Of a stretch of 64,000 nucleotides of DNA, positions 6,448 to 50,985 are shown one piece after another. Position 1 is the first letter of the stretch, and each line of letters begins with the position of its first letter. The stretch is taken from NCBI GenBank assembly GCA_038496445.1, contig JALMLS010000568.1, positions 69,485 to 133,484 on the forward strand. The letters are read 5' to 3'. Below the pieces are notes generated by a model. That model was not told where the DNA came from, did no database searches, and saw only the letters and a list, made by a program, of their open reading frames with translations. The DNA comes from Trichosphaerium sp. ATCC 40318 (lineage: Eukaryota > Protista > Tubulinea). The position numbers and the translations under genes are program-made.

Positions 6448-6618
6448 ATCTACTTTGTATATAATACACTAGTACCAAAGTACACATACAGGACATTCCC
6501 AAACCAAAAGATTAAGAATCAATCGAGAAATCTTACATATTTTTAAACACAATATTTTTGGTGTACTCACACAGTATCAACAGCTCATATTGAAGCAACG
6601 ACGAGTATATAATGTTTT

Positions 6619-7529
6619 TTATATTGGAACAACCTCTATCTCTATTTCTTGGTCTTCCTTTAGACGTAAAACATCTCTATCTTTTCTAATTACAGTGTTT
6701 GGTAATTTTCTAACCATAGTTAATCTTTCTTTTGTTGTATCAATCTCCATTTCTTCTATTAGTGCAGTGAGAAGGCCACGAAATGTTTTCTCAGTGAAAG
6801 CAACTTCATAAAAATCCTCTTCACCCTTTCTTTTGACCTTTACAAAAAATTCTTCTAGACAATCATGTTAGTCATTAAACACTTGTTGTTTTGTTAACCG
6901 ATACTAAACAAAGCGCACAAACATGAAGTAGTATGTATATTCAAAACGTACCGGCAGGTTTTGGTTCTGGAGGAGGAAGCGTAACTTCAACTTTTTTTTC
7001 ATTTGTTTTTTGTAATTTTGCTCTTCTTTCGTCTGGATCTACCAAGTTTACTGGCCTAACTAATCTTTTTGTTCCCTGTGGTGTAAATGGCAGGTCTTTT
7101 TTCTCAACAGGTGCAACTGCAGCTATAAAATCCGTAAATTAAAAAAAGTTCAAGAAAATGGCGTGTCAAATAAATGTTACGACGGATAAAGATTGCGTAC
7201 CTTGTTTTTCGCCAAATAGAGACAGTATGGAGGCGTCTGTGGTTAATTGACTTGGCAATTCTTGTTTTTGTGTTTTAATTTGCGGATCAGCACCGTTAAG
7301 CAGTAAGAAGTTCACTGCATTTTGTCTGTTGCCCTTACAAGCCCAATGAAGCGCTATATTAACAAATGTAAGTAAAACGGAGTAATTATCAACGTTTCTT
7401 ACGTGTATAGCCGTTCATTGGGTTAGCTGCATTCACATTGAGACCTCTTTGTAGCAGAATACGTAAATTGTACATATCACCAGCATACGCTGCTTCTTCC
7501 AAATTAACGTCTTCCTTGTGTGGTTCCAT
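6619..7529 (-). CDS. ANKRD40: ANKRD40-like ankyrin repeat protein
   Basis: N-terminal ankyrins (LEEAAYAGD...NGYT-ALHWACKGN) plus the C-terminal VRKLPNTVIRKDRDVLRL signature typical of ANKRD40. Confidence 0.8.
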
Positions 7530-7667
7530 GCGTATTTATTACTTCAAAGCACTCTTTCAAGAATTGCCTGGCAAATTTTGTGCCATTGAAAATCTGACGG
7601 TCAAAATCAAACAGTATTTTAGAACATTGGTTTACAATAATAAGGTGATTCTATCAACTGTGTTGAG

Positions 7668-10600
7668 ATGGTGAGTAACGCTAGATGTAACAAATAGTTG
7701 CCTTCAAAGTGACTTTAGAGCCATGATTCCTTTCCGCTAAGTCAATACAATTCCTTTCTCTGAGAGGCTACTGGACGTGCAGCATAATGGAGACTGATGG
7801 TACGCTTAAAAGCGTTTTTGCAAGCAAAATTACTGTCGTACGCAGCGTTTACTAGCGTTTAAAGCTAACTTATCTGTCAAGTCGCAACAGCTTCTTGAAA
7901 CAACCCAAAAATTTCTTTGCGATGATCAAGAGCGTTTTTTAAATGAAACGCCGACAGGTAATGCTACGCCGCTGTCCTAATACTTATAGAAATAACGTAG
8001 ACGAGCTCAGCGAGCTCCGAGATTACATTGCGGGGTTTAGATTTTCGTTTCACTCGCTGTTTGGCGAAATGTTTTCTGAAAGCGACAGTTTCATCATTGA
8101 AGGTAAGCCAAGCATATTATTCGCTTAGAAACAACACTAGCGAAATAGATCCGCAAATGTGACACCTTTGTAGGTGATTCTGTTCTAGCAACATTACTAC
8201 TCGACGCCAAACTTTCTTCTGGAGAATTCCTTCACGTAGTGTATCTGTTTGAGCGGTTCTTGGTTAAAATGAGAGAGTGCAGCCCATGCTTCACGCTACT
8301 TTTTATGCAACCAAACAGAAGCATCTGGGTAAATAACCCAGAATGCCTAGCTCTTCGAGATTTGCTCATAAGGTACGCGACAAACGAGCTTTCTTCAATC
8401 CTTCCTGCCAAGATAACCACTAATCCAACCTTACAGTCACTTACAACGTAACACGACCTTCAATATTAAAGTTGTAGACTACGACTGTTTATCTCCCGAA
8501 TTCAGCTCTTACTTGAAAGAGTTCCACCCGGCGTTTATTGTATGCTCTAATGGATCTGATTCATCTATGAGAAACCTTTTAAAAGGACAACAAGTATCTA
8601 TTCTACAAGCATTCATGATGGTACGTTAAGTCAGACTAAGCTAAGCTTTTTTTTCTTCTCACTTTTTTTAGCAATGTGTCGTTTTGAATCACAATGTTGT
8701 GTGCATGGAAGAGTTACAAGTTCATGGTGGACGTGTATGGGGTTGGATACTATATTGGGTATTCAGTGTGGGCAGACATGCTAAAAGAATGAAACCAAAC
8801 ATTGTACGAAGAAAAACTCGAGTTTTCATCTGCTTCTTTTTTTCGGCTGACTTAACATGTTAGAAAGTCGCAATGGATTTATCTCGTAGCGCTCTTGCCT
8901 CGTTTGAAAATGAACTATCTATAGAACAAAGTACGTGGCTTCTATGAAGAGAATTATTTCTAACACAAACTGATTATCTAGGTATTGCTGAAGTTGAGGT
9001 ATTTACATACGCAATGGGTTTGACTATTCAATCAATACAAAAACTTGAAGATTATGAAAAAATGCGTGATTGCTTAAAGATATTTGTACTTCAACTACAC
9101 CTGTTGCCTCACATTCCTCTTAAATCTAGAGTAAGTACCACATTCGGAATAAATGCTCACAAGTTATTTACGCTATTGTATAGGCTTTTCTGATGCTTCC
9201 AGTTGAAACAAGTAGCTTGACGCTTATTGAACCACTTGTCAAAACTATTTTTCGCTATTTTGTTGCAGCGCGTTCAAAGGTAGAAGGCAATCTATGTTAA
9301 TACTCCTAATAATTCAATAGGATAATGTTACACTTCCTGAGTGTCCCTCAAATTGCTTCTCTAGAAGAGTACTCAAGCAGTTGGTTAGCTTTTTACACTT
9401 GGAATCAACTGGAATAGTTAGTACGTCGTTGTTTTTGCGTTTGATCTTTTTCTGTGAGATTATAATTGTGCCTTTAGAATCTCGAGAATCTGCTTCAGAT
9501 ATCCTAGGTATCCCAGACAATATAATACGTGAAGCTGAATCATCTTGGATGACCATCTGTTCGCTCGCAAACATAAACGATAATTTCTATCCTATTTGCT
9601 CGAATCTTGATGGTATCTTGGATGCTGATGCTCTCAACGCATTGTTACTAAGCAACAAAGGTACTTATTGCTTGTACAAGTATATAACTGATATTCTACA
9701 TAGCGAAGCCTTTATATGCTCTTCCCTTTGATTCTCCATTGGAAACATTTATTCTTGGCGACGAAGCACAACAAATTCCAAAAATTGACGGTATGAGAAA
9801 AAAAAAAAAAAAGGAAAAAGCTTCTAATGTCTTGTTCTAGAAAACGATCCAAGCGTATTGGCGATAAATAACAACAATAATTTCTTTAACGAAAAATATC
9901 ACTGGCACAGAAAGCAACCGTTGGTTCAAGGTACTCAAGTACACCCAAAGAGAAGAACAAGACCATACTAAGATTGTTTTGCAGATTTTAAACTGAAGAG
10001 GGATGATAAACGTGAATACACTGAAAGACAATTAAGTAGGAGAAAGAATAGACTCCAAACATATATGCATAAATACGCAGAAACGCTAGCTGGATCTCGT
10101 ACGATGGCTATTGATCGAAATGTTCATTCGTGATTTATTCTTACTTTTTTTTCTCTTATTTTTCAGATTTAAAGCAAATGGAGATTCAAGCTGTCTCAAA
10201 TATAAAGGAACCCACAGCTAAGGAAAAAGCTAAATATGAACGTATTAAAAAACAAGAGCAACGTAAGAAGGATATACAAGCAAAAGCCAAAAAAGGTCAA
10301 AAAAAGAAACCAACAAAAAAAGAACAAAGACATGCAGAAGTAGCAAAAAACCTCGCTCAGAAAGAACTAAATAACAGTAAAGAAAAGGCACTCTCTAGTC
10401 ACTACTCATAATTATACTAATTATTTACAGTGGCTTGGTATTAAGAAGCGTATGGCCAAGGGAAGCTTCGAAGAAAAGATAGAGCAAATACAAAGAGTTG
10501 TCGAAAATCCCAATCAAAATGTTAGGTTTTTTGATTTTGTACTTGCTGACTCTCTTAGGTCATTATTAAGGATCTAGCGTGGTTATATAGGGTACCTAAC

Positions 10601-13600
10601 ATTCTTTCAAAGCCTACTGATAAATTTTAAAAGCTATCTATCTTATCAAGTGAGTTTACAAAGACACCGAGTATCGTGTTGAAGATTGAAATATTTCGAA
10701 CGATTCATCATCTCAAAGATGTCAAATCACCTGAAGTGGCTTCTGTACGCCATATATGAAAGTAATAGTAGCTGAAAAAAATATTCTAGGCTTTAAAACT
10801 CATCGGGTTTCCTAAATGTGCGGCTAGCATGTCGTCGAAAAGAAAAGTACATGTTGAAACAGATGCTATTGAAATGCAAATGAACCATCACCAAGAAGAC
10901 ATATCACGTGTTTCAGGAACAGAATTAGATGATCCAAGAGTAAGAGGCTTCAAATTAGACGCATGGCAAGTCAAATTGCTCAATGCTGTTGATGCAAATG
11001 GTACGATATTGGAACCGAAAAAAATGATTCATTTTTACTCTAGAAAGCGCTCTGATTGTTGCACCTACTTCGTCTGGAAAGACTTTTATTTCATACTACT
11101 GTATGGAACAGGTACATTAAAAATACTTTCTGTCTATAATAACCACAAACTGATTTGTTTTTCGGCCAGACTCTACGTCAGAGCGATGAAAATATTGTTG
11201 TTTATGTTTCTCCTTCAAAAGCTCTTGTAAATCAGGTTGCAGCATCAGTTCTTGGAGCGTTCAAAAAGAGTTATACAAAGTCTAATAGTAGAAACTTGTA
11301 TGGTATCTTCACAAGAGACTACAGGTTCCCTGAGGACAATCCATTAAAATGCCAAGTACGAAAAATTAATACTATCTTTGGGTGTAGTTTCTTCCTTTTA
11401 AATTTCCCACGTGACTTCTTTTTTGTTAAGTGGAAGTATCACGTTTTTGGAAAGTTTGTTTTTGTGCACTAATTTTTGAAAGATACTTGTTACTGTACCT
11501 GTTCTGTTGGAAGTTCTCTTGCTTTCACCTGAAAACAGAGAATTTGTAAAAAAGATAAAATGGGTAATCTTTGATGAGGTTCACCAAATTTCAATGGAAG
11601 GAACAGGTCCTTACTGGGAACGTTTACTTGTTATGATAAAGTGTCCATTCATTGCACTTTCTGCAACAGTAGGAAATTACAAGGAGTTTTATTCGTAAGT
11701 GACTAAATTGTCAATGTTGCTAAAGTATACTTTTTTGTTGACTTGTTTTTCGTGTAGCTGGCTTGTTAACGTGCAAGGAAAACTGTCTGAACAATACCCA
11801 GATGAGAAAACAGAACAAATAGAAATAACAAGAGGACAAAAGTACATCACAAAGAAACCCAGACGGTTCAAAGGTAAACTCTTTTTTCTCATTACAATTC
11901 TTCTTTTTTTCTTACTTTTTTTTCTTCTTTAGTGCACCTCATTCATCACAACATACGGTTCTCAGATTTAAGAAAACAATTCTATCTTCCTCAAAAACAT
12001 AAGTTAGATAAAATGATAAGCGCTCCAGTTACATCAACAAAAGATCCTTTGAGCCACGAAGTCGGGTTAGTAGCGACTCTGTTGACAGAACTTTTTCTAA
12101 TCAAGATTTCGTGAAAATACAGAGTCTTCCTGAAGATTCATCCTATGCATTGCTTAACAATTGCCATGCTCAAAGACAAAGGCTTTCCTGAAGGTACATA
12201 GATCACCAAACGTTCAATAACTATTCATGCTAAACACTTGGTTTCTAGACCTTATCTTGGAGCCACAAGATATCCTAAAACTTCACAATGAAATGGTTAT
12301 AGTTCTACAAAACTCAGTTTCGCAACAAGATCAAGATACTGTTTTGCCTTCGCTTCTTCGATCTCTATTAGATAACAACCCATCTAAGTACTTCAAAGAA
12401 GTTCTAGTGACAAGACATAAAACTCGTGACTTTGCCAGTGATACAGTGAAGGTAAAGCAATGTCCAAAATACGTATTTGTTTAACACTGTTTTGTTTAGA
12501 TGTTTATGAGTATACTTACCAAGGGATATGAATCAGAGATTCAGCAAGTTCTTGATAGTCTAAAGACTCTAGGGATTCCCGATCCGAATGATAAAAAGAC
12601 ACGTTCTGATACATACTCTCGTAATTTCATGGTAACGCATTTGTTACGATTATTGACAAAGCTACGAAAAGAAGTGAGTGCTTGGTATCTCTTTTTTTGT
12701 CTAATAGTGTCTGTCATAGGATAAACTACCTTGTATTGTCTTCTCTCTTGATAGGAGTAATGTCACAGCATTGCTAAGTGGTGTTGTACGTGACTTATTG
12801 CTTGAAGGGGTTTTTTAAGAAAGAGCATTGTTAATGATTGTATAAAGGTTTTATCTTTGTTACAAAGTGAAGAAGCTTTTAAAGAAAGTGAAGAATACCA
12901 GAAGAAACTGAAAAGGAATATGCAGAAGAGAAAGGTTCAGGCAGCGAGGCAAAAGAAGGCACAAAATACAAGAAAAACGAAAGACGAGAAAGAAGCCGAT
13001 GAGGTACGCTTCAAAACCAGGATATCACCGGGTTTATGTCTTACTCCTATAAGGTGTTCGAAGAGGAAATAGTAGAAGCTTTGCCTGATGTTGAACTTGA
13101 TTTCTCTTTCTTGGATGGTCAAGTCGAAGTAGAATTAAACTGGCAACTCGAAAAAATATTCAAAACGAGACACAATGGGCAGATACTTCTTGAGTACGTT
13201 TAGTCTTTCTAAGTAATGACTAATAGATTTAAGGGGTCTAAAACGTGGTATCGGTATGCATCATGGCGGATTACCTTTGGCGTATAGACGTTTAGTCGAA
13301 CAGCTCTTCAGACAAAAGGTGCTTGACTATTGAAAGCTTGTCTTACTGATGCTTTACTTAGAAACTGCGTGTAGTGGTTTCAACTTCTACTCTTGCACTA
13401 GGTATTCATATGCCTTGTCGTTCGGTGATTTTTGCTGGAGCTAATATATGGCTTCATCCAATGAGCTATAGGCAAATGTCCGGACGTGCAGGAAGGCGTG
13501 GTTTTGATCGTAAGTTACAAGTAATTTAGACCTTTTATTCTCATTATATTGTAGCTATTGGTCATGTTGTATTCTATGGTGTCTCTGATAGTAAATTGAA

Positions 13601-22722: not shown

Positions 22723-24354
22723 TTACTCCTGGCGAGCGAAATTGTTATTTCCAAACTGATTTGGAATAGTCATTATTTTCCTTTTCTTGCGCGGATTTTT
22801 TTGTAGTGGTATGCTAATAATAACGTTAGCGAGGAACTAAAATCAAAACACGTGCATATCGTTTGCGTTTCTTTTACCCTGGACTTTTTTCGCAATAGGT
22901 ATATTAGTTATTTTCTTTTTTTCTTGAGAGTATTTATCTTCCATCTCTTCTAGGGAATCATAGAAATAAATATAATCTCTTTTGTCCACTTTACAGCCTT
23001 TGCAGGCTCTACATGATGTGACGTATATCTTTATCTCATGAATTGTTTCTCCACTTGGTTTGTGTTCAAAGGTTGCCACGTATGTTCCCGTAAAAGCAAA
23101 TGCTAGTATAATCTCATATTTACTAGGTTCGCGTTCAGGACACCAATGATTTATTAGAAGCCCCTTCATTGAGTATTTCTCGTTCACATCATCGGAGTCG
23201 TCACAGCAATCAAATAGGCATTCATCGAATACAACTTGATCTTTCTTGTATGTTGGATTGCCTGTTATTTTCACTTTGTATTGGCTAATGTGCATTGAAA
23301 AGTGTAACTTGATAGACTCCCTTTTTTCTAGCGCGTTCGAATACCAACATATCGGTTCCTATTAATCAACAATAAACACAATGGATTTGTTGTATGTACT
23401 TGCCTTAACCCTTGATTTTGTTACCATCTTTGCACAACCATACTTGCATACATGATATGCTATTGCTTACTTTTAGTACTACAACGGACTTGATTGAGTT
23501 CGTACTGTTTGAAAGAGGATCATAATTGTTTCCGGGTAACGTTAAAGAGTTTGGTTTGCTTTGCCTTTGCTCGAGTGAAAATGATTCAACGGGTAAGTGT
23601 GTTGCTTCTTGTTCGTATATTGCAATCGTATTAGGTATGGGTAGCTGTGAAACCTGGGTTGGCGATACAGTTTGGCGCTGGTCGCATGTGCGTTCTCTGG
23701 AAAGAGGTGCGAACTCTTCAAGGGCAGCCGGAAGAGCTGACTCATTTTGAGTCGCTGGCAGAACCAACTCTGTCTCCGTAGCTAACTGGTATGCAGCACA
23801 CTTCTCAGCAAACATGTCTAGTATTTTTTGAAACTTCGCTTTCTTTTTGTGGTAAATCCAAGCAATGAATTGCACTGACTTGTTTGAGGAAGTCCGAGTA
23901 TAAATGTCAGCGCCTGCGTTAGTTAGAGGAGAACTTTTGGACTGAAAAAACCCAGTACCTAGGCGAATGAGGTCGCGTATGGTGTGTAAGTTGCCGACTT
24001 TTACAGCAACGTGTAAAGGTGTATGACCGGCTGAGTTAGTGCTGTTAAAGTTGACGTAGCACTTTTTAAGGATCTCAAAAATGGGCGTTGTGGTCTCCTG
24101 GCTCGCTGCCACGTGAACTAGAGTGTCTCCAGCTAGATTGATATAAGCGATACAAATTTCGGGCAAAATGCTAGGGATGAGCGCACAACACAGTTTGAAC
24201 CGTTCTAAATTGTGCGTATTTCTAGCTAGTATTTCTTCTAGTAATGTAAGTTTGTTGGTATGTAGGGCTCTAAATGCATCAACAACTAATATCATTAATA
24301 TCATTTTAACGTATTACACGAACCCTCCTGACTCAACGCGGTAGTTGCTTCCAT
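22723..24354 (-). CDS. Pair 1 gene A: ankyrin repeats + unknown domain X + basic NLS-like tail
   Basis: GDTLVHVAA and GHTPLHVAVKVG ankyrins. Domain X KGLLINHWCP...YEIILAFAFTGTY...YIYFYDS. Last exon PRKKRKI. Confidence 0.75.
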
Positions 24355-24457
24355 TTATGGTTATTTGTGGATTTTGTGAGTAAAAAACTGGTCGAAACTG
24401 CTCAAGTTCGAACAACTTAATAGTTGTGGAACAAAAAACTATTACTCAAGGAAGTAA

Positions 24458-27400
24458 ATGTATCAAACACCGAAATTGCGTCTTGAACCCACTACCGTTT
24501 GTACATTACTTAACTTTGTTGGAAACGAAACAAGTAAAGAAGTACCCTGTTTGGAACCTCCACCTTGCCTTACACTTGTACTGGGGCTGTTTTTTCTGAT
24601 TTGACAAGTATTTAGGTTAATAATGCTGGTATTGATGAGTCGCATTACTATGTGAAATGTACTGTTGTACAGAGGGAAACAAACTGTTTACGTCGTATTG
24701 CGCTTCGCGATCCAATTATGGCTGACAAGGAACCGGCTCCTAACGTGAAAACCGTTACACGACTGTTCTGTAGAGGAACCGCAACGTTTACAGATATCCA
24801 GTTAGGTATGTTATGCTATTTTTTAATGCGCTAACATTTAAAAGGCCTTGCTACTTACACCCAAAATTTGGATAGAGCATTGACTTGCAGTCTTGAATTT
24901 TCTGTAGTCTCGGTACGCGAGTTTGAAGGTTGCCACTAAAAAATGTAGAAACAATTTCCGAATTCAGCGCCATTAACAACCGCGATACTGCTTGTAGAAG
25001 CGCATGAGTGGATAGGCTAGTAATTTATCAGCGTATGTGCTAACAACATACAGGACATTCTCTCGATAAACCTTACATTGAAGATATTTCGCATCCGGAA
25101 ATACTTGTTGGACGCCAAGAGAGTACGTTGCTTAACGACGGAAATTTATTAATATATTATTAAGCGGCGGTAATCTATGGACGCAACTTCGCGCCACCAT
25201 CTATTGTTAAGTTCTCACATGGTGAAAGCGTGGAAAAAAACCACGATAACAACTCTTATATTCCTAAAATAAAAATGCCTTGTTTTGAGTACGAAACGAC
25301 CATTGACGCCTGTGTGTTATCTCGTACGTTTTCTTGTAGCACTTTGAAGTCTAATTGTAAAAAAGTAAATGGGCTATCTAATAAAATAAAGATCCAATAC
25401 TACTTAGAAGATTCGCCCTATCGTGATGATTATCAAAAAACTATAGGTATGTGCGACTTCCCGTTTATGTACTCACTTGTTAAAAGGGATTAATGAACAA
25501 AAAGGGAATGATGAACAATATCTACTCCCCAGTTTCGCAAACAAAGACAAGAAAATGGGTGAATCAGACGATGACACTTCCTGCTCTGCTTGGAACAATA
25601 ATGTTGGGTCATTTTTTTCGTTTGAGTATACATTTGGGGCTCTTGGAGCTAAGAGACATTCCAACTGTATGTGATTCAATGATGCTATACATCCCTAAAC
25701 AAGAACTAGACGGAGAGACCGCGCTTCATTTTGTAGCAGCCCACGGTACTGTTGACAATACGAGAGTTCTTCTCGCTGAAGGTGCAACGCTTGAAGCGAA
25801 GAATAATCGAGGCGATACGCCTTTATTCTATGCTGTAGCAAAACGAAATGAGCCTGTTCTTCAGTTCTTAATTGAGAACGGTACCAAGAAATATAACCTC
25901 ATTTTGTTTTATGTCATGCTTTTACTATCATAGGAGCATCTTTGGAAGTAGTAAACAAGGATGGTATAACACCTATCATGCTTGCATCGCTGTTTGGATA
26001 CGATCTGGAAGTTGCAAAGAGTTTAGAAAAGCGTAGGAAACAGGTTTTAAAAGCCGGAGGTGTTGAGGTATGATTTAAAAACTCTGTACTTTGCTGCGCC
26101 TATGACCAGTTTAACTGTTTTCTTCAACAGTTTATTCCTACAAAAATCCTTTCATCAGCATACGACGATGACTCAGTAGGTGGTTGTGTTAACGACTCTT
26201 CCGCCACTATCAGTTATAGCCCTAAAGAACTTCCCACTTCCCCAAATACAACACCACGTACCGAATCATTTGTTCACCAATTTGATGGTATACATACGCT
26301 ATACGATAAAATAGAACGCGATTGGAACGAGGAGTATCAAGTATGAGATGTGATTGTTTAATGCTTCATTTATTTATTACTAGTCTCTCAAAGAGCAACA
26401 ATTTAGCGATAAAAGCAAAGAGCTAGAGAGAACATCGCAATTACGACATTTGACCGAAGTAAAAATTTTTAAATACTTCTGAATGCACGCATTAGCTTAT
26501 ACGAATAGGAATTTTCTGCATGCGCCACAGAGACTGCTAAGCGAATTATATCAGAAGTGCACTTGCCTGACTCAAGAAAAACTATTAAGCCTGTTACCAA
26601 GTACAACCCTCATTTATAGCGTTTGGAAAAATACAATTGACTCTCCAGATTTTATTAATTCCTGCTTTTAGTAAACTCGGTGGCGCTGGTGGAGTTCAAG
26701 TACGTATCGTATTACTGTTTCCAAAACGGTTTTTTTAACTTTTTTTGTCTGTTTACAGTTTTTCCACAATTCCATCTTGTTCAAGTTCCCAAGTGATGGT
26801 AGAGGGATATATCAAAACCAAGATGGTGTAAGAAAGGCGTGTGGACATGAATTGAAGGGTTTAATGTGCTTGATGGACTGTCGTGTTGAAGGTAAGACGA
26901 AATAGCATCTTGTAAAACCTTAACTTTTCTTTGAAAAATACATACACTAACAACATTTTTCTTGTCAGCGTTATGTTTTCCTTTGATGACTATTATTGAT
27001 TATCGAGGATGGCGTATTCTAGCGGAAGCCATTTTGCCAATTGATAAACAAACTGTTATTTATGGGTCTACAGATGGTGCTCAGACTATTCATAATAGTA
27101 ATGATGAAATGGACGAGAAAATGGGGATAGTCGCGAAAATTCTGAATTTAGAACCTGAAGAGGTCTGGAACCGGGATAAGACCAAGAAAACGCGGTTGCA
27201 TGTCTCTTGTGATATCGAGGGGCACCTTGGACGAGATCATAGGTTCTACCTAATCGGTACACCTCTTTAACAAGTCAAATTTTTTCAAAAATATCCGTCG
27301 TCATTTTTTTGGTTAAAATCGATCACTTACTCTATTTATTTCGTCTGTAATTTAATGTATGTTTTTTTTATAGATACTGCACGTGTTATGCCACCGGCTG

Positions 27401-29932
27401 AACCTATAGTTGGTATTAAACGTGGATTTCTTTTTCAACAACTTCGGCCTGAACTTGTTGTTATGAATTCTGATAGTCTTTGTGCTGATGCTTTTTCTGG
27501 GTTTACTATTTGTAATGCAAAAACACATAAGAAACATATATGTGATGCAACAAGAAGATTAACTAATCATGTCATACCACACTTTGGTAAAGAATTGATG
27601 AGAGATAGAAACTTCTTGAAGAAGCTTAATGATCCTACTAATTACGTTTTTCAGCATCTAATCACTGCGCTACATCAGCATGGTATAAATGTTCGGTATT
27701 TGGTGCGTCTCAGTCTTCTTTTAACAGCGGTTTTCCTACGGTTTTCCAAACAAAAGAAAATGTTGTAACTTACCTGTTTTCCTTTTTTTGGCTTTGTCTT
27801 TTCTTCTCCCGGGGTGGGCTAAATTTTCTTTAGGCTATGTTACGGAATAGTGTACAAGGCGAAGAATTGAGAAAGTTTTTGATGACTGAGATGGTTGCGC
27901 GTGTGCTTAAACATGAACTTCGTTCAAAAATGAGTGAACTTACGCAAACAAATGACGAGGACTTTTTTGTGCTAGTAGCTGACTTCTGCAACTTGGTTCG
28001 TATTCTTTCCTACACTAATTTACGCGGGCACTTGTGGTAGTACTTACTTATTACGTACACTAGGTGTTTCAAGATCACCACGACTCGTTCATGCTTTGGT
28101 CAACAACAATACATCATGAACTAAAAAGTCGGTTTGTTGGATGGGATTTAGAGTCTACACAGTCTACTTATCTTAAACAAACATGTGTTCTCCCTTTCCA
28201 TACGTTTAAACGGCTTATGGCTCTAACGTGTTTTTCTATTTCGAAGGAACGTGAAGCGTATTTGAAAATGAATTGGAAAAAATTGATTTCGGGGCGTGGT
28301 GATGTCTTATTACGAGCAGCTGATGTAACCAGTCTTGATCCTAAGGTTAAGCATATACATAGGTTGTATTTTGAAGAAGCTACAGCTATGCCACATTATG
28401 CAATGAATACTAGAAATCAAAAGAACAAAAAACATTTATTTAAAAAAGCTGTTCAAGGTTTTGGAACGGCTATTCGTGCTAAGCCTGGTGACTTTAGAGC
28501 ACATCATAACCTTGGTATATCTTACCTATACTTAGCAAAGAATATAACAAAGCTAGATAAAACAAATATTGAGGTACGGCAAGTCTAAGAAAGGAAGAAA
28601 AAAAAGAAGTTCATAAGAACTTTTTTCTTCTTGGTGTTAACTGCTTTCTGCTGTAGGTTGCGGATCAGAATAAGCTGCTACAGGCCCGTTATTACCTTGA
28701 GAAGTCTGTTTCAATGAGACCTAGAGCTGATACTCTTATTCATTTGGCGGACTGTTGTGTTGAAATTGCAAAAACTCATCACTCTCAAAAAAAGGCTCTT
28801 GATAGTTTGAACAAGGCTTTTACTCACTTTAAGAGCGCTTATAATTTAAAAAAGACTGCTGGTCTTTTTCTTAGTTGGGGTAATGCTATAATACAATGTG
28901 CGAAGGTACATCTTATTTGGGATAAAACACGTGATGACAAGAAAAAAGAACTTTATGTTGAGGCTTGTTCTTTTTTCAAAAAAGCGCATGCTCTTGGTAA
29001 CAAGAAAAATCATACTATCTTGGTTCAGTGGGCTCTAGCACTTCATGAGATGGCTCTTATGTGCGGAGCAAAACAAAGAGATGTTTTATTTTCGAAGGCT
29101 ATCAGGAAATTCGAAGAAGCAGCAAGTTTTAAAGGAAATTATGCAACTTTTTGGCATTGGGCTAATACATTGTATCGTCATGCCCGATGTCTTATTGCTG
29201 ATTGTACTGAAAAAGCGTCAGAGGATAAAGGGTATATAACAATGATTTTATCTATATTAGGATCAGCAGTGGATAAATACAGACGGTACTTGAGCTAAAC
29301 AACAGTTTTAAATCGCTAAACGAAAAAAAGTTTGGTTGGATTTTTTTTGCACGTGTTTTGTTTCGCTTACCTTAATTTTGTAGAACAATTCAAGCAAGGC
29401 CTACGTGTCGTAAGGCTATTTCAAATTGGGCGAAGGTATTAACGTCTATTTGGGATATATCAGCGAGGTTTGGTCCTCAGAAACAAATAGATCGATGTTT
29501 TGTTGAACAACTGACGGTTTTTTTGAAAGAGCATCACAAGGTTCATGTACCAGCTAATCAGCGTGAAATACTTTTAAAACAGATTACAGGACTTCATCCT
29601 GATGTTAAATCTATGGTTGATAATTTTTCACAGCCTCTTGTGAAACATTCACCAAAGCCACTTCAAAATGTATGGCAAACTTCACATTCTCAAGAAGCTC
29701 CTAAGAGAAGTCACTCTTCAAATGTATTAAGACAAGTTTTCGCATCAGATTCTGTTGGTACTTATGAACCAAAGGCAAAACGACAGAAGATTACGAAGGT
29801 AATAAGGCTTTTCCTCAAAGAGCTTTTCTGTAAGTTGTCTTGTTCTTTGTTTACTGACACTTTTTTACAAAGACTGAGTCACCTGATGATGACATTATTT
29901 CTATGACTCAAGATAGTCAAATGGCTGGATAA
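24458..29932 (+). CDS. Pair 1 gene B: putative Ig-fold domain + IPT/TIG + ankyrins + CLU domain + TPR-like repeats
   Basis: LLNFVG...LEPPP, ATFTDIQLG and AHEWIG, then IPT-like PYIEDISHP...AVIYGRNFAPP, ankyrins DGETALH and GDTPLFYAV. CLU motifs RDWNEEYQ, GHELKGL, IDYRGWR, YGSTDG, DIEGHLGRDHRFYLIDTAR, LRPELV, HQHGINVRYLG, EMVAR, followed by TPR-like helices. 3' end approximate. Confidence 0.75.
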
Positions 29933-31102
29933 TACAGTCTTTTTCATTTTACACAACCAGCTTCACAACAATTGAATGTTCTCAGCTTGGTTCTCAACTT
30001 GGATCACAACTTGTTTTTCAAATGCCTGTATCTCATACGAATTATCAGCCAGATAACATTGTCAAAAGACGTCCAAGGTACAATTTTGCTAAGAACACCT
30101 CTTCCTAAAGGCTATGAATATCAGAGTTTTGAAAGAGAACGCTGACTTGAAGGTACTTTAATAGGTTTGGTTTTTTTTTTGCTTAACGAGAATTCAATAG
30201 TATATTTTGGCGACCGCTTCAAAGTTGTTCAAGTACATTCAACAAAAGTAATGAGAGGAACCTAGTAGATAGAGTACGAAGATACCACATGAATATACGA
30301 TGTCTGACATTGTAACATATGAGAAGTTGTAAATGTGGCCATACAAAATTTGGTGTTCCAGTTATGGACAAGTAAATTTGGAACAGCCATCATTTCTTCT
30401 AAAAATAATTTATTGTCCGTGTCATTCGAGTTTACTAATATTTTCTAGAAAGTCAGTTTCTAGCACTTTTATCAGATCAGCAAAAATTGACACTTCTGTC
30501 AAATGGTGTAGATCTATCACAATGTGAACTATTTGCGTTACTATGTTGTCCTTCATAGTGTGACTTCAAACAAACTTTGCCTCTTTTCGATTGACAAGCC
30601 GGCAGAACTACCAAATTCCAAGAATTTCAAAAACTGTCCCAAAAGCGATGCTGCCGTTAACGCAACTAAATTTTCATTACAACAATGATGCACGCAAATC
30701 CTTTTAACTGTGCTATGCATGTCCAACTAGCAAAGAAAACCTTCAAAATCAAAAAATACAAAAAAGAACAGCTCAACATGTTTCCCACACGTATATATGC
30801 GTTCCGTACGACTTTACTAAATAAAAGTCTTTAGATATGCGTTTTCTTTTGTTTTGTCCGGTTCGTTTTAGCTGTTTGCTGTTAGCTCTTAACATTTTAC
30901 AACACTACGCATCCTGTGCCAATAGTAACAACGACAATTGTCTAGGCGAACACCTTTATTACCTTCTATGACAACATAATGAACAAGTTCTTGGGTTGTT
31001 TAAAATAGCGACGCCAAAAAAAAACAAATGTTAAGTTTATTTTTACAATAGAGTACGGAGAACAAAACAGTTTTGGTGGATTATGAAAGCCATAGCTTAG
31101 CT

Positions 31103-32345
31103 CTAAATGGTTTTGTATGTGATACATAATTTTTCTTCGTCGAGGGGTAAAGAGAACGTCCCTTCCATGAGCTCATAACATGCTTTACCAAGAGAAATGA
31201 TAATGTCTTTAGTTGGGAAAGTGTGTAATAGTACTCGCTTTCCACGAGTAACGTTGGCATTGAAATGATTGGCCACAAAAGACGAAAATTGACTTACAGT
31301 AATAGGTCCCGGAATACCTGAAAATCGAACCTCTTGGACTGTAGGGCGGTGAGCCACAGCCGACCAAAGTAGACCATGAATAAAAAAGCAGCTCTCTTTT
31401 GAATTGGATAAAGGGATGCTGTCAGAACCTCGCACTGTGATGATATAGGAGCTGCTGGTGATGTCCAAATCAGCGTTTTCATTTTGTAGCTTTTCTATGA
31501 TTATTTCTTTGGAGCCATAAATGCGATGAGGCTTCCATGAGAAGCTCGTTAAGTTCTTTTTCAGAAAGAGTATTGAGACCATGCTTGAAAAAGCAGCTTT
31601 CTTTCGAGTAGGCTTCAGGGATGCAGTCAGAACCTCGTACAGTGATGATAAAGGAGTTGTTGGCAAAGTCCAAGTCAGTGTCTCTTTCTTTGTGAAGTTT
31701 TTGTAGCTTTTCTATGATTATTTGTTCAGAGCCATAAATGTACTGCGAGGCTTCCATAAGAAGCTCGTTTAATTCTTTTTCATTAAAAGTATTTCTATTG
31801 ATTGCAACAGGAGTTGTGGGTGTATTTCCGCAGGTGATTTGTTCATCTACAGGTTTACCAAGCAAGCTGATTTTGAACGTTGAAGAATGCTTTTTACCCT
31901 CAAGGAGATTCGACATTTTCTCCTTCAGGATGAATTACTTTTGTGCAATCTCGCAGCCTTTTCTATTCGTTGCCTCATTTGTTTATTGTATGTAAGCCTT
32001 AATTAACATTAGCAGTTAGCTGAAACTAGAGTAATCTGATAACGTACTGCTTTGTATTTGTTCGCTATCTCACAACCCGTTTTCTGTTCTTCATCCAAAA
32101 TTTGTGGCAACAAACCAATATCATCTCAAGCGAAATATCACAGTAGGAGTTTTAAATGGATATTCGCAATAATGTTGGCACAAGGTCGAAGCATGAGTGT
32201 AAGTTTCCTTCTCGCTTTTCTTCTTTTTTGCTTTCCTTGACTCTAATGTGAATTTGTTACTCACTCTCATAAGATCTCAAAACCTCAATATCATGGAAAC
32301 CCATTTGAAAACCATGACCCAATTAGAGTAATTCTTCCTGGAAAC
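31103..32345. pseudogene. Rearranged gene-A pseudogene: chimeric, frameshifted domain Y (minus strand) plus an inverted domain X fragment (plus strand)
   Basis: 31103-31575 is near-identical to 41858-42330 with a 2-bp deletion. 31575-31916 is a diverged partial Y copy. ~31920-32050 matches the reverse complement of ~59830-59985. ~32065-32345 matches the reverse complement of ~43170-43450. No ankyrin exons. Confidence 0.75.
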
Positions 32346-34694: not shown

Positions 34695-37600
34695 ATGGAA
34701 CGACGATTGCCTTTTGCGCGTCTCGAAACTCCCAAGAACGTTTGTACTTTGCTTAACTTCCTTGGAAATGTAACATGTAAAGAGGTGCCTTATTTAGACC
34801 CTCCACCTCGCATTAAACTGGTACTGGGGTTGTAGTTTCTGATTTGACTTGATTTAGCTTGATAGCCTTGTAAACGAGTGGGATTACACTGTACTATGTA
34901 CTGTTGTACCAAAAACAGACCATTTACGTCGTATTACACTTCGTGATCCTGTCTCAGACTCTGGAAATAAGTCGGTTCATACCGTACAGCGACAGTTCGT
35001 TAATAGAATCGCAACGTTTACTGACATCCAGTTGGGTATGTCAACACTATTTTATAACATATTGTTTGCTAACAATTTAAGGCCTTAAGACATACACCCA
35101 ACATTTTGATCGTGCTTTGCAATGCTCTCTTGAATTTTCTGTTGTCAAAGTACGTCCGATTTTGGTTGGTTCGCCTCTAAAAAATTTAGAAAAACGACAG
35201 CCAGTCAGAGCCAATAATAACTATGACACTTTATGTCGAAGCACATGAGTGGATAGGTTGTAATTTATCGCTTACTATGTTGTTAATAATGATAGGACAT
35301 AGTCTCATGTCGCCTCATATTGTCAATATTGCACCTAACAAAGTACGTGTTGGACATCAAGAAGGTAACGTTTGTTACATGATTTTATTGAATATTTAAC
35401 ATATTTTTATAAAGAAGCCGTAATCTATGGACGTGACTTTGCTCCACCATCTATTGTTTTCTTCACAACCGGTGAAAGTGTAGAAAAGGAGCATGAGTAC
35501 ACAGCATTTATTCCTGAAATAAAAATGCCTTGTTTGGAGCAACCAGAAGTAGTTTGGGCTCGAGTATTATCTTGTACGTTTTCTTTTGTAAACTTGTACG
35601 GTTCTTATGTTTAACCAAGTAAATGGGTATTCTAATTATGTACCTATCGAATACTATCGAGAAAATACAACATCTCAAAATGGGTATCAACAAACCATAC
35701 GTGCGTGCGACTTCCATAGTTATATTCTCACTTTTTACCAAGAAAATTATGAGAATTACGAAGGGACTTGCATTTACAAAGACGAGACAATGGGCGACTC
35801 AAGTATGGAACTTTCCTTCTTTTCTAAGAAGATAATCTTTTTACAGGTTTTTCGTTTCCAAATACCTTTGCGACGCTAGGACCAACAGGACAATCTTGCT
35901 GTATGTTTACATTGTCGCTACAAATTTCTAAACATGAACTAGACGGAGAGACTGCACTTCATTTTGTAGCAGCCCATGGTACTGTCAACAACGCAAAGAT
36001 ACTTCTAGGCGAAGGTGCAGCGCTTGAAGCAAAGAATGAACGAGGCGATACACCTTTATTCTATGCTGTAGCAAAACGAAATGAGCCTGTTCTTCAGTTC
36101 TTAATTGAGAATGGTACCACAAAATAGAATCTCGTTTGGTGATTTGTCGTGCTTTTACTACCATAGGGGCATCAGTAGAAGCGGTAAATAAGGACGGAAT
36201 TACGCCTATCAAACTTGCGTCACTGTTTAGATATAGTCTGGATGTTGCAAATAGTGAAGAAAAGCGTGTAATACCGGTTTTAAAAGAAGCAGGTGTTGAG
36301 GTATTATTTAAAAAACTCAGCAAATTTTGTGGCTATTAAACGTGATTCCTTCAATAGTGTATTCCTACAAAAAACATTACATGCACATACGATAATGAAG
36401 CACATATTGCAGGTGGTTCAGATAGAGGTAAGCACGAGAACAACTTTTTTTGTGGATTTTCATTCTCTTTTAAGATGTTTATCTGGCAACCTATGCTGGC
36501 CTGTATGTTGCTATCAAGATATTTAAGGGACAATTTGCTATTGATTCAAAAAGTGATTTTAGTTTATTTAATAGAGAGGTTATCGCATTAAACTCTTTAC
36601 ATCACGAAAATATTGTAAAATGTCTCGGATACATTCAAGGTACTAACATATTAACTTTTTATTGTTGATTGTTTTAATATAAGGTGGTGTTACTATGAGA
36701 GGTATAACCACAAAGGTATTGGGTATTGTAACACAGTTTCTTCCTGGCTCTGATTTAGCAAATATGATTGATTGTACAAAATTTTCACTCTATCCAGTAC
36801 GGGGTGTGTCTCGTTTTTGCTCGGATATTAAGTTGGTTTGTTTTAGGCAAATGGTTTCAAACAAATACTGAAGATATTACAAGGTATTGCTCAGGGTATG
36901 GCGTATATACATAAGTTAAATGGGGCACATAGAAATCTAACAGCAGAAAATGTAAGACAAAAATAGTACAATCTTTGTTACACATCCTTTTGTAGTTGAG
37001 CTATTGACCTGTTTGCTTAGGTACTAGTGTGGGCAAAAGACAAAGTAAAAATAACAGGTTTTGGACTTTGTATATACGACACAACTGGTGTTAGTAAACT
37101 TTCTTCTGGACCTTCAGTGAAAAAAAGAACTGCCAATACTAGTAGATCTCTCCGTCAATGTGTTGGTACACCAATGTACGTTCAATTCTCTACCGAGAAT
37201 GCTAGCTATGGTTTTTCTTTTTATGCTTTTCGTTAAGTCTCTATCAAAGATACATGGCTCCAGAAGTACATACTTTCTTCCCCGACACTTCACTTTCAGC
37301 TAAAGTAACAATTAAAGATTGGCAAATGTACGTACTTGAGCATTATGTAAAGGCTTATAAGAATGCCGTACTAAAGCCCTTTGTAGGGCAGATGTGTATG
37401 CTTTTGGTGTACTATGTTACGAGCTTATAAGCTCTACGCGGGCTTGGGGAGCTTTAGATACAATAGAGCTAGCGTAAGATTTCAGCAATTGAGATAATTA
37501 ACCCACGTGTTGTGTAGACGTCTAGTATTACATGGGCACAGGCCAGAGTTTCCTGATGGAGTTTGGGATAGTGAGGATCTAGCAGAAGTGGGAATCTTGG

Positions 37601-39482
37601 CACAAGACTGTTGGGATGCTGATCCTAAAAAGAGGCCTACCTTTCGTCGTATCATTGACACTTTGGAGATTGTCGAACAAAAGACGAGTAAAAACAAAAA
37701 AGATCCTCAAAGTATGCCTTTAGTGTTCGAAAATGCGTTTTCTATGCTCACACTTTGTAGTTCTAGGATCAAAGATACGCTCTACATGTACGTTTAAAAT
37801 GAAGCTATAAATTCCTAACTAAAGTAGATCGGGAGAGTTCAATTCCTTTTGGGGCGCATGGCACTTTAGATACTGCAAAGGATCAGGTTATGACTGAAGT
37901 CAGAGTACAAACTTGATTGTGTAACTTACTTAATTAACAAATGATCACAGCAGGAAATCGATGCCATGGATGTAGACATTATAACTCCAAACCAACATTT
38001 AGAACATGGCAAACTTGAAAAAGATACTTACTTTAGTACGAGTATTGTCGTACGTTGTAATTGATTTGTGTGCTACATACAGTAACTTCATTAGGATAAG
38101 TTTTTTTATCCAAACACAAGCGAAAAGGACACTTGCGTTCAAAATACTGAAGATGATATGGATGTCGAGAAAATATTGGGAATAGACGATGTGACGTTAG
38201 GTAGGGAGTTAGTCGACATAATTTTATACCAATATCTTCAAAGTTAGTTATACTAAGTTTATTGGCAGGGTTTGAATCAGCACGTGGCGAAAAACTTACA
38301 AAACATCGAGAAGAGATGGAATATAAATACTCTCAATCCAAGCCAGAAAAGAAGACCCAAAGAAAAAAGAGAAAAACCGAAATTACCGAGCTACAAATGA
38401 GGAAAACAAGTACACCTTCAGAAGAAACCAAAGTACAGTTTCAGTTTAAAATATATTTTCTTCCAAATAGCTTATACCTACAAACAAGCATACATCAAAT
38501 TACGATGAAGAATGGATTGACAGTATACGCAAAGGTAGGATAGATAGTACAACAGTTTAATAACATTTTGTTTGTAACAGTAATGCCAACAACGGAATTT
38601 AAACTAAACGTCAACGAGATCTGTTATGATAGAGCCAAGGTACTCTAGTTATCAAAAAGTGCTCCTTAAACTCACGTAAAAAGCCGCATGCCTTCGAGAG
38701 AGAGCCAATCCCACACGATAATCCTATTATTGTATATCATCCAATTGGAGTCTATAATTGGCGAGACGTTCAGTATACCATTAAATGCTTGAGTAAGCTG
38801 TTTGTACAGGAATTGACTAAATATCCTCACATATTCATAGACAAACGAAACAAGGGTGAACCCAAAACAAAAGAGGATTGGAATGTAGCATTTGACCGGG
38901 GACTTTATAATCACCTTCTTCGTAATGAAATAGCGACTATTGACGGGACACAGACTATTCTTTACTTTCAGTTTGCATATATTGGCGAATACGAGATATC
39001 TCTATTTTACTACACACCTGATCATCCAATTGGAGTTGTCAAGTGCCATGTAGTTTCTGGGCTACCTCCTTTTGTTCCTAGTTACCTTGAAAAAACTACT
39101 CGGCCTAGTCGGTACCTTTGTTACTCATCTCTACTCTTGCTAAATATAATACTAGAAAGCGTCTACGAACAGATGATCACCCCAATGATACTTTATATCC
39201 CCATCAAAACAGTAAAATTGTACTGGATAATGAAGCTTTTTTGGACTTGCTTCAAAGTTGTTCAAGTACATTCAACAAAAGTAATGAGAGGAACCTAGCA
39301 GATAGAGTTCGAAGATACCATAATGAATATACAAAGTCTGACAAAGTACGTTTTGTTTAATAGTTAAGGCGAAAGCGGTTGTATAAAACAATTTTGTGTA
39401 GGAGGATAAGGAACTCAATAATTTGGCTACTAAATTGTATGCCACTTTTAATGACCACGTAAAAGATGATACTTCAAAGTAA
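34695..39482 (+). CDS. Pair 2 gene B: Ig-fold-like + IPT + ankyrins + TKL-like pseudokinase + C-terminal X-related domain
   Basis: N-terminus homologous to pair 1 B (LLNFLG, LDPPP, ATFTDIQLG, AHEWIG, IYGRDFAPP, DGETALH). Kinase fold VAIK, LHHENIV, GMAYIH, HRNLTAENV, ITGFG, GTPMYMAPE, DVYAFG, CWDADPKKRPTF. Then TILYFQFAYIGEYEI. Confidence 0.75.
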
Positions 39483-41857: not shown

Positions 41858-44124
41858 CTAAATGGTTTTGTATGTGATACATAATTTTTCTTCGTCGAGG
41901 GGTAAAGAGAACGTCCCTTCCATGAGCTCATAACATGCTTTACCAAGAGAAATGATAATGTCTTTAGTTGGGAAAGTGTGTAATAGTACTCGCTTTCCAT
42001 GAGTAACGTTGGCATTGAAATGGTTGGCCACAAAAGACGAAAATTTACTTACAGTAATAGGTCCCGGAATGCCTGAAAATCGAACCTCTTGGACTGTAGG
42101 GCGGTGAGCCACAGCCGACCAAAGTAGACCATGAATAAAAAAGCAGCTCTCTTTTGAATAGGATAAAGGGATGCTGTCAGAACCTCGCACTGTGATGATA
42201 TAGGAGCTGCTGGTGATGTCCAAATCAGCGTTTGCATTTTGTAGCTTTTCTATGATTATTTCTTTGGAGCCATAAATGCGATGAGAGGCTTCCATGAGAA
42301 GCTCGTTAAGTTCTTTTTCAGAAAGAGTATTGATGGCATGAGTAGTAATTGTAACTTTTCTCGGATCAGGTTCGGTGCTCCAGATAGTTGTAGGTGTACA
42401 TCCATTATCGAGTTGTTCTTTTGTGAGTACAGGTTTACCAAGCAAGTTGATATAGAACGTTGAAGTATGCTTTTTGCCAACAAGCAGATTCGACATTTTC
42501 TCCTTCAGGATTTCATCTGAATTACTGTTGTGCAATGTCATAGGCTTTCCTGTTCGTTGTCTTTTTTGAGAATTGTTTAAAGGCCTAAAATTAATATTAG
42601 CAGTTGTAGCTGAAATTGAAATGACGTGCTGGTGTGCATTTTTTCGCTTTTTGGACATTTTCTCCTTCAGGATTTCATCCGAATTTCTTTTTTGCAATGA
42701 CACAGGCTTTTCTATGTCTTGTCTTTTTTGAGGATTGTTTGTAGGCCTTACATTACATTAACAAACTGTAGCTTAAGCTGATAACATACTGCTTTGTATT
42801 TTTGTTTGCACGACTGTTGAGGTTGTTTTCTTGTTCTTTTACTTGTTTTTCAGATGTGTAGTATGTTATTTTATCTTTCATGCCTGCGTATTTGGAATTA
42901 CGAGAGTAAGCGCGGATGGTTATCTTAAAAATTTCTTCTTTGGAGTCAACGTGGCTGATGATCGCAGTGTACCACCAACCATGAGCAAGCGCCAATACCA
43001 AATTGTATTGTAAATTTCCATCTGGCGTTATTGTAGATGATTGTCGTTTCTCCAATACTGGATGTCTCCCTTTATTCTTATCGTGTTTTGTGTTTGGTTC
43101 GCTACAAGGGAATTTTCGTTTTAAGTCTTTGGTCTTATGCTTAACCTCACATACATATTTTGTTATGTCGTTTCCAGGAAGAATTACTCTAATTGGTTCA
43201 CGGTTTTCAAATGGGTTTCCATGATATTGAGGTTTTGGGATCTTATGAGAGTGAGTAACAAATTCACATTGGAGTCAAGGAAAGCAAAAAAGAAGAAAAG
43301 CGAGAAGGAAACTTACACTCATGCTTCGACCTTGTGCCAACATTATTACGAATATCCATTTAAAACTCCTACCGTGATATTTCGCTTGAGATGATATTGG
43401 TTTGTTGCCACAAATTTTGGATGAAGAACAGAAAACGGGTTGCGAGATAGGTGTAAATTCACGTGACTTTTCTTCTTGTATCTTTTCTGGGGGTGACTCA
43501 AGTGTCAAATGAGCACTGTCTGGTATTTTTCTTGAATTGCATGAACTTGTGGTTTGTACATTGTTTAAGTTTTCTTTGAGCATAGATTGCTCCTCTCTAT
43601 TTCGTACGTAACTTCTTATTATTTCCTCGATTTTAATTTTACCAAAAATTCGGGCTGCTGTGGCTGGTGTCAAACCATCAGTTGTAGTTGCATTGACATC
43701 AGCTCCTACAATAGTAAAGTGAGGACAGAATATGATTAAGCTAAAACAATGAGCAGTACCCGCGTGTAAGAGAGTGCTAACGATAGGAACTTCACCTTTC
43801 ACCGCGGCTACGTGTAGTGGAGTTAAGCCTCTTTTTTTAGTTTTCGCATTTACATCAAACCCGTTGTTTAACAGTAATATGACAGCGTCATGGTTTTTTC
43901 CATTTATCGCCAGGTGCAGCAACGTTTCTCCATCTTTTTAATGTGTCAGAAACGGGAGAAACATAAAAAGGAAACAAGTAAACGAACCGTCTAATTTTTC
44001 GTTTAGAAGCGAACTGGCACCTAGTAGGTGCGTTTTTTGAATTAATTCCATTGCGCTAAATGCTTATTAGCGGTAGTATGTTGAGTATTTATCGTTACAT
44101 ATCTAGACCCGAAGGGACACTCAT
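41858..44124 (-). CDS. Pair 3 gene A: ankyrins + domain X (second subtype) + duplicated basic exon + domain Y
   Basis: DGETLLHLAI, GLTPLHVAAVKG, GLTPA; FKWIFVIMLAQG...LQYNLVLALAHGWWY. Splices in frame into the Y ORF 41858..42703. Confidence 0.75.
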
Positions 44125-44260
44125 TTGAATATTGGTACGAAATTATAAGCTTGTGAAGACTTAACAAACGCTAGCCTCGAACAAATTCAGTTAATTTAAC
44201 AACAAATGGTTTTGTTTTCGTCAATCAAAAATAAACTATTAACTCGAACAAACGCGCCAG

Positions 44261-50950: not shown

Positions 50951-50985
50951 TTGGTTAATGACATCAACTTAAAGTGAAATAGCCC

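Follow-up and report, generated by a model that had tools for sequence, protein, structure and literature searches.

Young chimeric genes that arise through segmental duplication, such as jingwei and Sdic of Drosophila, consist of 5' exons joined in frame to the copied exons of another gene, with donor and recipient extant and the breakpoints still readable. In the Amoebozoa, the CLU domain followed by TPRs is known as a signalling module. In Dictyostelium, the proteins CldA (SH2-CLU-TPR), CldB and ComB (Rab), none of which belongs to the CluA/CLUH orthologue group, carry it inside signalling proteins that have unrelated N-termini and no CLU_N domain, in connection with phosphotyrosine signalling (PMC2906285). 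Here we describe a gene, designated B1, located approximately at positions 24458-29932 (plus strand) of a stretch of 64,000 nucleotides from Trichosphaerium sp. ATCC 40318. This whole stretch (the window in what follows) corresponds to positions 69485-133484 of contig C173 in G000, a eukaryotic assembly of 70 Mb in 642 contigs. On our reading, B1 is a young chimeric gene with a new architecture in the known promiscuous CLU family. Like jingwei and Sdic, it joins the 5' exons of one gene in frame to exons copied from another, both parents being extant. Unlike in those genes, the copy is genomic (introns included) rather than a retrocopy, its insertion point is within an exon, it took the place of a resident domain of similar fold, it left the 3' end of the recipient, and it shows signs of later conversion by the donor. 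The N-terminal partner of the CLU-TPR part also differs from the SH2 and Rab domains of the Dictyostelium proteins, and consists instead of a beta-rich part and ankyrins that belong to a local family of tandem genes. The DNA history of the rearrangement is traceable to the nucleotide. We consider it likely that B1 as a whole is a chimera made at the DNA level, through the genomic copy of a gene of the type found on contig C14 of the same assembly, with a fusion protein as the most probable product.

The window is a tandem array of divergently oriented (head-to-head) gene pairs, with the A genes on the minus strand (for example the ankyrin gene at 22846-24313) and the B genes on the plus strand, namely B1, B2 (~34700-39350) and B3 (~44240-47820). 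Their introns, as elsewhere in the assembly, are short (~45-160 nucleotides) and of the GT-AG type, and the C-terminal modules vary among the members of the array. The N-terminal exons of B1 (24458-26067, plus strand) form open collinear tblastx blocks with B2, the first of which opens with the ATG at 24458. They encode a beta-rich part followed by ankyrins (~25703-25880 and 25934-26067), with a Pfam Ank_2 match on 25484-25930 (E 3.7e-11), and end in VLKAGGVE. At the nucleotide level, positions 24478-26171 align by blastn with 34718-36398 of B2 over 1.7 kb (71.5% identity, E = 0). The label "IPT" that had been given to the beta-rich part is a motif-level impression; Pfam found no TIG/IPT match at E <= 1 on the single-exon translations of 24616-24831 and 25164-25490, the putative domain spanning two exons.

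From the letters of the window alone, the original prediction held that the three B genes share a pre-kinase linker with an intron at the same position, and that B1 then switches to CLU and TPR at the point where B2 and B3 enter the kinase N-lobe. Both statements are borne out, the first one by coordinates, alignment and blastn, and the second by Pfam and, for the TPR part, by a structural model and its PDB matches. In B1 the linker reads VLKAGGVE (26044-26067), followed by an intron of 63 nucleotides and by FIPTKILSSAYD (from 26131). The corresponding elements on the plus strand are VLKEAGVE (36277-36300), an intron at 36301-36357 and CIPTKNITCTYD (from 36358) in B2, and VLKAAGVK (46383-46406), an intron at 46407-46478 and FIPTNNIVSTYD (from 46479) in B3. 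The three introns fall at an identical codon boundary in the alignment. That of B1 (26068-26130, plus strand) runs from GTATGA to AACAG and contains an in-frame TGA at 26071. Since the linker is the end of the 1.7-kb alignment between B1 and B2, its likeness in the two genes is not due to chance. Past the linker, B2 and B3 continue through a Gly-rich loop (IAGGS.. in B2, LGGD.. in B3) into a kinase N-lobe, recognized by Pfam as Pkinase / PK_Tyr_Ser-Thr (profile positions 15-72) at 36474-36665 and 46462-46773, respectively. The open reading frames (ORFs) of both genes have GFG in place of the expected DFG, and this TKL-type kinase-like domain is probably an inactive pseudokinase. In B1, no kinase-like C-terminal domain was found between 26172 and 30216 or beyond.

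What follows the linker intron of B1 is a chimeric exon (26131-26340, plus strand) whose 70 codons include neither a stop nor a Met. It starts with the B-type linker sequence FIPTKILSSAYDDD (26131-26172) and continues with donor-type sequence up to ERDWNEEYQ, where the CLU domain begins. Its splice sites have the same double origin, the acceptor being B-type and the splice donor (GTATGAGAT) C14-type. Pfam returned no match for this exon taken alone.

The origin of the foreign sequence could be located within the same genome. The CLU-TPR part exists in only three copies according to blastn and a DNA search of the whole genome, one in the window, one on contig C576 and one on contig C14. The region G000:C14:92046-96405 shows 80% DNA identity to the window over 26175-26718 and 93-97% over 26741-30215, introns included, and the captured segment (26175-30215, plus strand, 4.04 kb) is a DNA copy of it, with both exons and introns. 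On C14 its limits are 3 nucleotides past the donor ATG (MQVGGYVND..) and 60 nucleotides inside the intron that follows the first kinase exon. In the C14 gene the TPR tail leads without interruption to a kinase-like domain, matched by Pfam Pkinase at positions 70-140 (9.6e-7), and the donor would therefore have been of a CLU-TPR-kinase-like type. The kinase-like domain of C14 (G000:C14:96391-97687) has degenerate motifs, with ..YFELRPSKM.. where HRDLKPxN is expected, so that it is probably a pseudokinase too; no close paralogue of this kinase-like exon was found in the genome.

The left breakpoint falls at 26172-26176. According to the blastn limits, homology to B2 extends up to 26171 (36398 in B2) and homology to C14 begins at 26175. 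The microhomology at this joint, GTAGGTGGTT (26176-26185, plus strand), corresponds to GCAGGTGGTT in B2, where it encodes the Gly-rich loop IAGGS, and to GTAGGTGGTT in C14 (codons 3-5 of MQVGG), the 10-mer G(T/C)AGGTGGTT being common to the three genes. At the right breakpoint (30215/30216) the homology to C14 stops and that to the B2 unit restarts at 39249, with TTTTGG as microhomology. The B-type 3' flank that resumes there (30216-30309, plus strand) matches 39249-39343 of the B2 unit at 93.7%, and further blocks of B2-unit homology follow up to 31576 at 93-100%. Between the two breakpoints, blastn and Pfam delimit an interval of B2 without counterpart in B1 (36399-39248, plus strand) that contains the kinase-like exons (36474-37794) and a terminal ORF (38633-39295, 221 residues) for which no Pfam match was found. 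In place of this interval B1 has 4.04 kb of a foreign gene, and the B-type 3' end is kept.

The region behind the stop codon of B1 is informative about the direction of the transfer. The stop, TAA at 29930-29932, is common to the window and C576, and C14 has GAA at this place and reads on. In the alignment with C14, the following 283 nucleotides (29933-30215, plus strand) are a degenerate remnant of the donor coding tail and kinase start (..PLPKGYE..), with indels of 1, 11 and 2 nucleotides relative to the open frame of the donor. Because this decayed tail persists after the stop of B1, the transfer must have gone from a C14-type gene into B1, and the reverse direction, with C14 derived from B1, is ruled out by the same stretch. 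The retention of the kinase by B2 and B3 also bears on the direction, and no likeness to B genes was found upstream of the donor ATG on C14. The C14 donor, the two breakpoints, the resumption of B-type sequence and the remnant of the donor tail, taken together, support the earlier proposal that a CLU-family gene was captured and took the place of the kinase, with a junction that can be traced, and do so more strongly than the letters of the window alone could.

In a locus as repetitive as this one, with a 93% paralogue of the CLU part located elsewhere, an assembler might have joined the B cluster to a C14-like gene, but we see next to no chance of such an artefact. A second contig of 13 kb (C576, positions 1-13063) contains a 98% copy of window positions 25685-31576 that has its own single-nucleotide polymorphisms and indels, and both junctions are thus present on two contigs (C173 and C576) with independent differences. 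Since C576 bears the same junction independently, the junction is real. Furthermore, the CLU part diverges by 5-25% from C14 and has its own stop, common to the window and C576, the left joint leaves the reading frame intact, and at the right joint the B-type sequence restarts precisely. The collinearity of C576 with the window is limited to 25685-31576; outside this range the contig resembles other units (pair 3 and the 52-kb region) at 78-91%, and it represents a haplotype of different structure or else a second locus or cluster.

The coding content of the captured part was modelled exon by exon. From 26131 onward there are 12 exons that add up to 2973 nucleotides, exactly 991 codons; they have conserved splice sites, and each of them is open in all three copies (window, C576 and C14). 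The CLU domain (26384-27256, plus strand, PF13236) is distributed over the exons 26384-26458, 26509-26600, 26672-26699, 26759-26891 and 26969-27256. The Pfam profile scores 99.3 bits on the last of these and 26.8 bits on 26759-26891 (cut-off 24). RDWNEE, the DF..A motif and GGxAGG come from the other exons, and the stretch 26509-26592 aligns end to end with 7 other CLU paralogues. The exon at 26672-26699 (plus strand) is a microexon of 28 nucleotides (N-KLGGAGGVQ) that restores the family motif GGxAGG and has its splice sites conserved in all three copies. An earlier exon model for 26509-26758, with a splice donor GTTACC at 26593, was dropped in favour of this microexon and its strong splice sites. 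The next region (27374-27995, plus strand; exons 27374-27764 and 27851-27995) is eIF3_p135-like, with exon-level PF12807 matches of 2.2e-4 and 4.6e-3 and a score of 21.8 bits, just below the cut-off of 22. It is followed by TPR-like helical repeats (28064-29285, plus strand; exons 28064-28573 and 28657-29285), for which the Pfam matches (TPR_11, TPR_17, TOM20_plant) are all weak. The AlphaFold2 (AF2) model of 28657-29284 is a helical repeat with a predicted local distance difference test (pLDDT) score of 91.8, and its best PDB matches by Foldseek are all TPR proteins. Two tail exons (29384-29798 and 29873-29929) and the TAA complete the gene (29384-29932, plus strand). An earlier version of the 3' end, with a stop at 29904, was discarded, as indels of 9, 6 and 1 nucleotides fall in the intron 29799-29872 and the common stop is at 29930. 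The predicted product would have ~1,400 residues, comprising the beta-rich N-terminus, ankyrins, linker, CLU, the eIF3_p135-like region and TPR-like repeats.

A way to look at the age of the chimera is to follow its divergence from the donor along the captured segment. Outside the coding sequence, B1 differs from C14 by 25.1% over 26341-26968 and by only 6.3% over 27257-30215 (Fisher p = 4e-16), and synonymous divergence steps likewise between these two strata. The flanks are also unequal when compared with the B2 unit, with 71.5% identity on the left and 93-100% on the right (30216-31576). The two strata and the unequal flanks point to gene conversion after the capture. The most plausible history would begin with the copying of a genomic piece of 4.04 kb, from a CLU-TPR-kinase-like gene whose closest surviving relative is on C14, into a B-type gene at its linker exon. 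The copy would have replaced the whole B-type C-terminal part (pseudokinase plus terminal exon) and left the B-type 3' end. The short microhomologies at both joints suggest an event of the template-switch or end-joining type. This capture would be the older event (dS ~0.27). Later on, conversion by the donor would have homogenised the 3' two thirds of the segment and conversion by the B2 unit the right flank, both tracts ending at the joint, where homology ends. The pattern suggests that gene conversion between non-allelic copies is ongoing.

The original prediction would have been contradicted by transcripts ending near 26200 and a CLU part with its own start. At the level of sequence no such separate start is seen, and one continuous gene is favoured. 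Between the linker and the CLU domain there is no stop in frame, the donor ATG was not copied into B1, and neither was the upstream or promoter region of C14. The nearest ATG (26169-26171) is out of frame, and from the TGA at 26071 onward no in-frame ATG is found until the middle of the CLU domain (GLMCLMDC, exon 26759-26891). Because of the position of this first in-frame ATG, a stand-alone CLU protein would lack ~45% of the domain. The alternative would be two genes, with B1 ending past the ankyrins and the linker, and the CLU-TPR part transcribed separately, its new promoter lying within the linker intron or close to it. The donor copy does start almost at the donor start codon and includes nearly the whole coding region, which, with no RNA run listed, would leave room for an internal start. 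Still, we give only a small chance to this arrangement, considering the missing donor ATG and upstream region, the junction exon without a stop that keeps a B-type acceptor, and the fact that the CLU exons upstream of the late ATG, which a separate protein would not include, are constrained (see below). The absence of a stop and of the donor start, the late ATG and this constraint lead us to favour translation from the B1 start, and B1 is likely to be translated as one fusion protein.

Selective constraint was estimated by the Nei-Gojobori method, comparing the window with C14. Over 965 comparable codons, synonymous divergence (dS) is 0.127 and non-synonymous divergence (dN) 0.041, a ratio of 0.32. 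The CLU exons have the lowest ratio (dS 0.270, dN 0.036, ratio 0.13), compared with 0.67 for the CLU side of the junction exon and 0.39 for 27374-29929 (dS 0.081). All exonic indels relative to C14 are multiples of three (3, 3, net 3, 3, 3 and 6), in contrast with most of the intronic and all of the post-stop ones. Among replacements that could be polarised, three are donor-derived and one B1-derived, with no excess in B1, although the relatives used are distant and the informative sites too few. A further B1-derived replacement, beyond this count, is a Lys-to-Gln change in the microexon. It affects the Lys of GGxAGGxK, which forms a Gly-rich-loop-like element of the kinase-like CLU fold. The remaining CLU-core residues that are invariant in 31 relatives are all present in B1 (the K of IxFKF, DxEGH, LD.AR and SDAFS).

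Several observations weigh against a functional fusion gene, or at least against parts of the reading proposed here. The Lys just mentioned is Gln both in the window (26697-26699) and in C576, and is Lys in C14 and in 31 of the 31 aligned relatives. The dN/dS values average both lineages, without a close outgroup. Between the window and C576 there are 12 non-synonymous and 4 synonymous changes, a ratio of ~0.8 based on few events, which with due caution could indicate a recent relaxation of constraint on B1. RNA sequencing runs were sought for 24400-29950 and none is listed, which is not proof of silence. The gene model is least certain at the splice donor near 27764 and at the limits of the intron near 27996-28063. 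The microhomology-mediated event and the later conversion are deduced from present-day sequence only, and the adaptor function considered further on is a guess from domain content.

Along these lines, the rearrangement could be real and its product a non-functional by-product of a turbulent array, unexpressed or drifting to a pseudogene. Besides the ~0.8 ratio, the loss of the invariant Lys in both copies and the lack of listed RNA runs for the locus, this would fit with a nonsense change relative to the donor that removes the tail and the kinase, and with the amount of recent conversion and rearrangement at the locus. We regard it as unlikely, since 991 codons in 12 exons are still open in two copies that are 2% apart, all splice sites are conserved, and frameshifts relative to the donor are confined to the post-stop stretch. 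In addition, the ratio of 0.13 in the CLU exons at a dS of 0.27 is well below the ~0.5 expected if one lineage had been neutral since the capture, and conserved sites show no excess of B1-derived change.

The captured domain belongs to a family that is very large in this organism. PF13236 was found in 85 places of the genome, counted as ~55 separate loci, a very large lineage-specific expansion, and B1 has only 27-59% protein identity to the other CLU paralogues. When the CLU core exon was compared with 1.84 billion representative sequences, 1613 matches were obtained, the best of them with only 49-57% identity. The nearest named relatives are amoebozoan Clu domain-containing proteins, from Tieghemostelium lacteum (KYQ91377.1) and Balamuthia mandrillaris (KAL6065374.1), which suggests an amoebozoan source for the genome; the identity of the B1 CLU core to proteins of this kind is only ~46-54%. 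A Clu domain is also said to be mentioned in a paper on the trypanosome protein FLAM3. We surveyed the architectures of 42 long database matches with Pfam and found CLU in 41, eIF3_p135 in 33, TPRs, Pkinase in three, and C2, LRR, SAM and VHP once each; the donor-like CLU-TPR-kinase-like architecture occurs in 3 of the 42. The sole ankyrin-rich match, considered as a candidate for ankyrin plus CLU, was rejected because it has no CLU domain and had matched through its repeats. None of the 150 closest CLU representatives shows likeness to the N-terminal or ankyrin exons of B1. The statement in the original prediction that no IPT-ankyrin-CLU fusion is known holds within these 150 representatives, which is the range over which it was tested.

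Canonical members of the family (CLUH, Clueless, CluA) consist of PF15044 (CLU_N), PF13236, PF12807 and TPRs. B1 resembles them in the order of CLU, eIF3_p135-like and TPR parts and in the kinase-like CLU fold. It has no counterpart of the N-terminal half, given that CLU_N (PF15044) or a GSKIP-like part gave no match in any of the B1 or donor exons scanned, and the exons that precede CLU in B1 are B-type. Unlike canonical CLUH, the C14 donor starts ~50 residues before CLU and ends in a kinase-like domain. B1 is one of the ~55 CLU loci and not a CLUH orthologue, and a role in mitochondrial mRNA biology is not to be assumed for it. The original view of CLU as simply a mitochondria- or RNA-related protein is not supported for a promiscuous module present at ~55 loci here and with amoebozoan Clu domain-containing proteins as its closest named relatives.

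Structural comparison suggests that the captured domain is of a similar fold class to the one that it replaced. The nearest named homologue was modelled over its CLU region (P0023:228-627, equivalent to ~26300-27760 of the window), with pLDDT > 90 in the core. The best match of the model is a Toxoplasma conoid protein (9ya0_EA, Z 19.6), and otherwise it matches only kinase-like folds with Z values of 5-6, weak when taken alone, among them HopBF1 (6pwd, Z 6.0), the alpha-kinase 3lkm, Bud32, ULK4 and RIO kinases. These matches agree with the published assignment of the human CLUH central domain to the protein-kinase-like folds, among which it is closest to HopBF1 and has its catalytic residues altered (PMC10041065). 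Given this model and the published CLUH assignment, the swap in B1 would amount to the exchange of a TKL-type kinase-like domain for a kinase-fold domain that is very distantly related, together with a TPR platform. B1 would then keep the N-terminal recognition part of its family and substitute one probably inactive kinase-fold scaffold for another, and the new scaffold would connect it to the partners of the large CLU family of the organism.

A different interpretation is suggested by the paired plant NLR receptors, such as RGA5 and RRS1, in which one partner carries an integrated domain that acts as a decoy. The similarity to B1, in the head-to-head pair, the variable cluster and the unusual captured domain in one of the partners, is an analogy only; no NLR core was seen in the exons scanned, and the locus shows neither a known pathogen target nor signs of an immune function. 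If extended to this locus, the A/B pairs would be a fast-evolving sensor system and the CLU-TPR part of B1 a bait for something that targets CLU proteins. The divergent A (minus) and B (plus) pairs in tandem, with their differing C-terminal modules, would suit such a system, as would the large size of the CLU family in the genome and the loss of the family-invariant Lys, since decoys often lose activity. However, the exons scanned gave no match to NB-ARC, NACHT or any further domain known from immune receptors, and the same features suit ordinary domain shuffling in a signalling family. Moreover, the partners to which CLU is fused in Amoebozoa and in the database relatives (SH2, Rab, kinase, LRR, C2 and SAM) make up architectures that are usual for signalling proteins (PMC2906285). 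The likening of the CLU part to an integrated domain or decoy in the original prediction finds no backing in our analysis, and we attach very little probability to it. There is also a slim chance that the A/B pairs are a diversifying sensor system with an exchangeable kinase-fold module, of which B1 would represent a recent swap of a TKL pseudokinase for a Lys-less CLU, serving as bait or as an alternative output. If so, it would be a modular surveillance system of a kind not described in amoebae.

Some other components of the array deserve mention. The minus-strand gene downstream of B1 (31371-31574 and 31576-31793) has an internal tandem duplication with 78% identity. The gene is found again behind B2 (41861-42757) and, in inverted orientation, near 60 kb (59883-60617), and is part of the repeat unit of the array. 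Between gene pairs, at 49633-50954 on the minus strand, there are two long ORFs (132 and 162 residues) with Cys/His-rich motifs that may be a transposon remnant.

As a rule, domain shuffling is deduced from architectures that are already complete. In the case of B1, the recipient, the donor, the breakpoints, the leftover of the donor and the conversion tracts are all legible in one genome, and the fusion interpreted here as the product of a copied C14-type gene would provide a concrete case of a signalling protein that changes its output module through a DNA-level copy into an exon. The biological weight of the B1 fusion, as read from DNA alone, is moderate, and its interest is mainly that of an unusually legible example. 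That the two exchanged kinase-fold domains both look inactive raises the question of what such domains contribute to the proteins that carry them. Within the family, B1 would support the view that CLU-TPR, outside the CLUH orthologues, is a general scaffold module.

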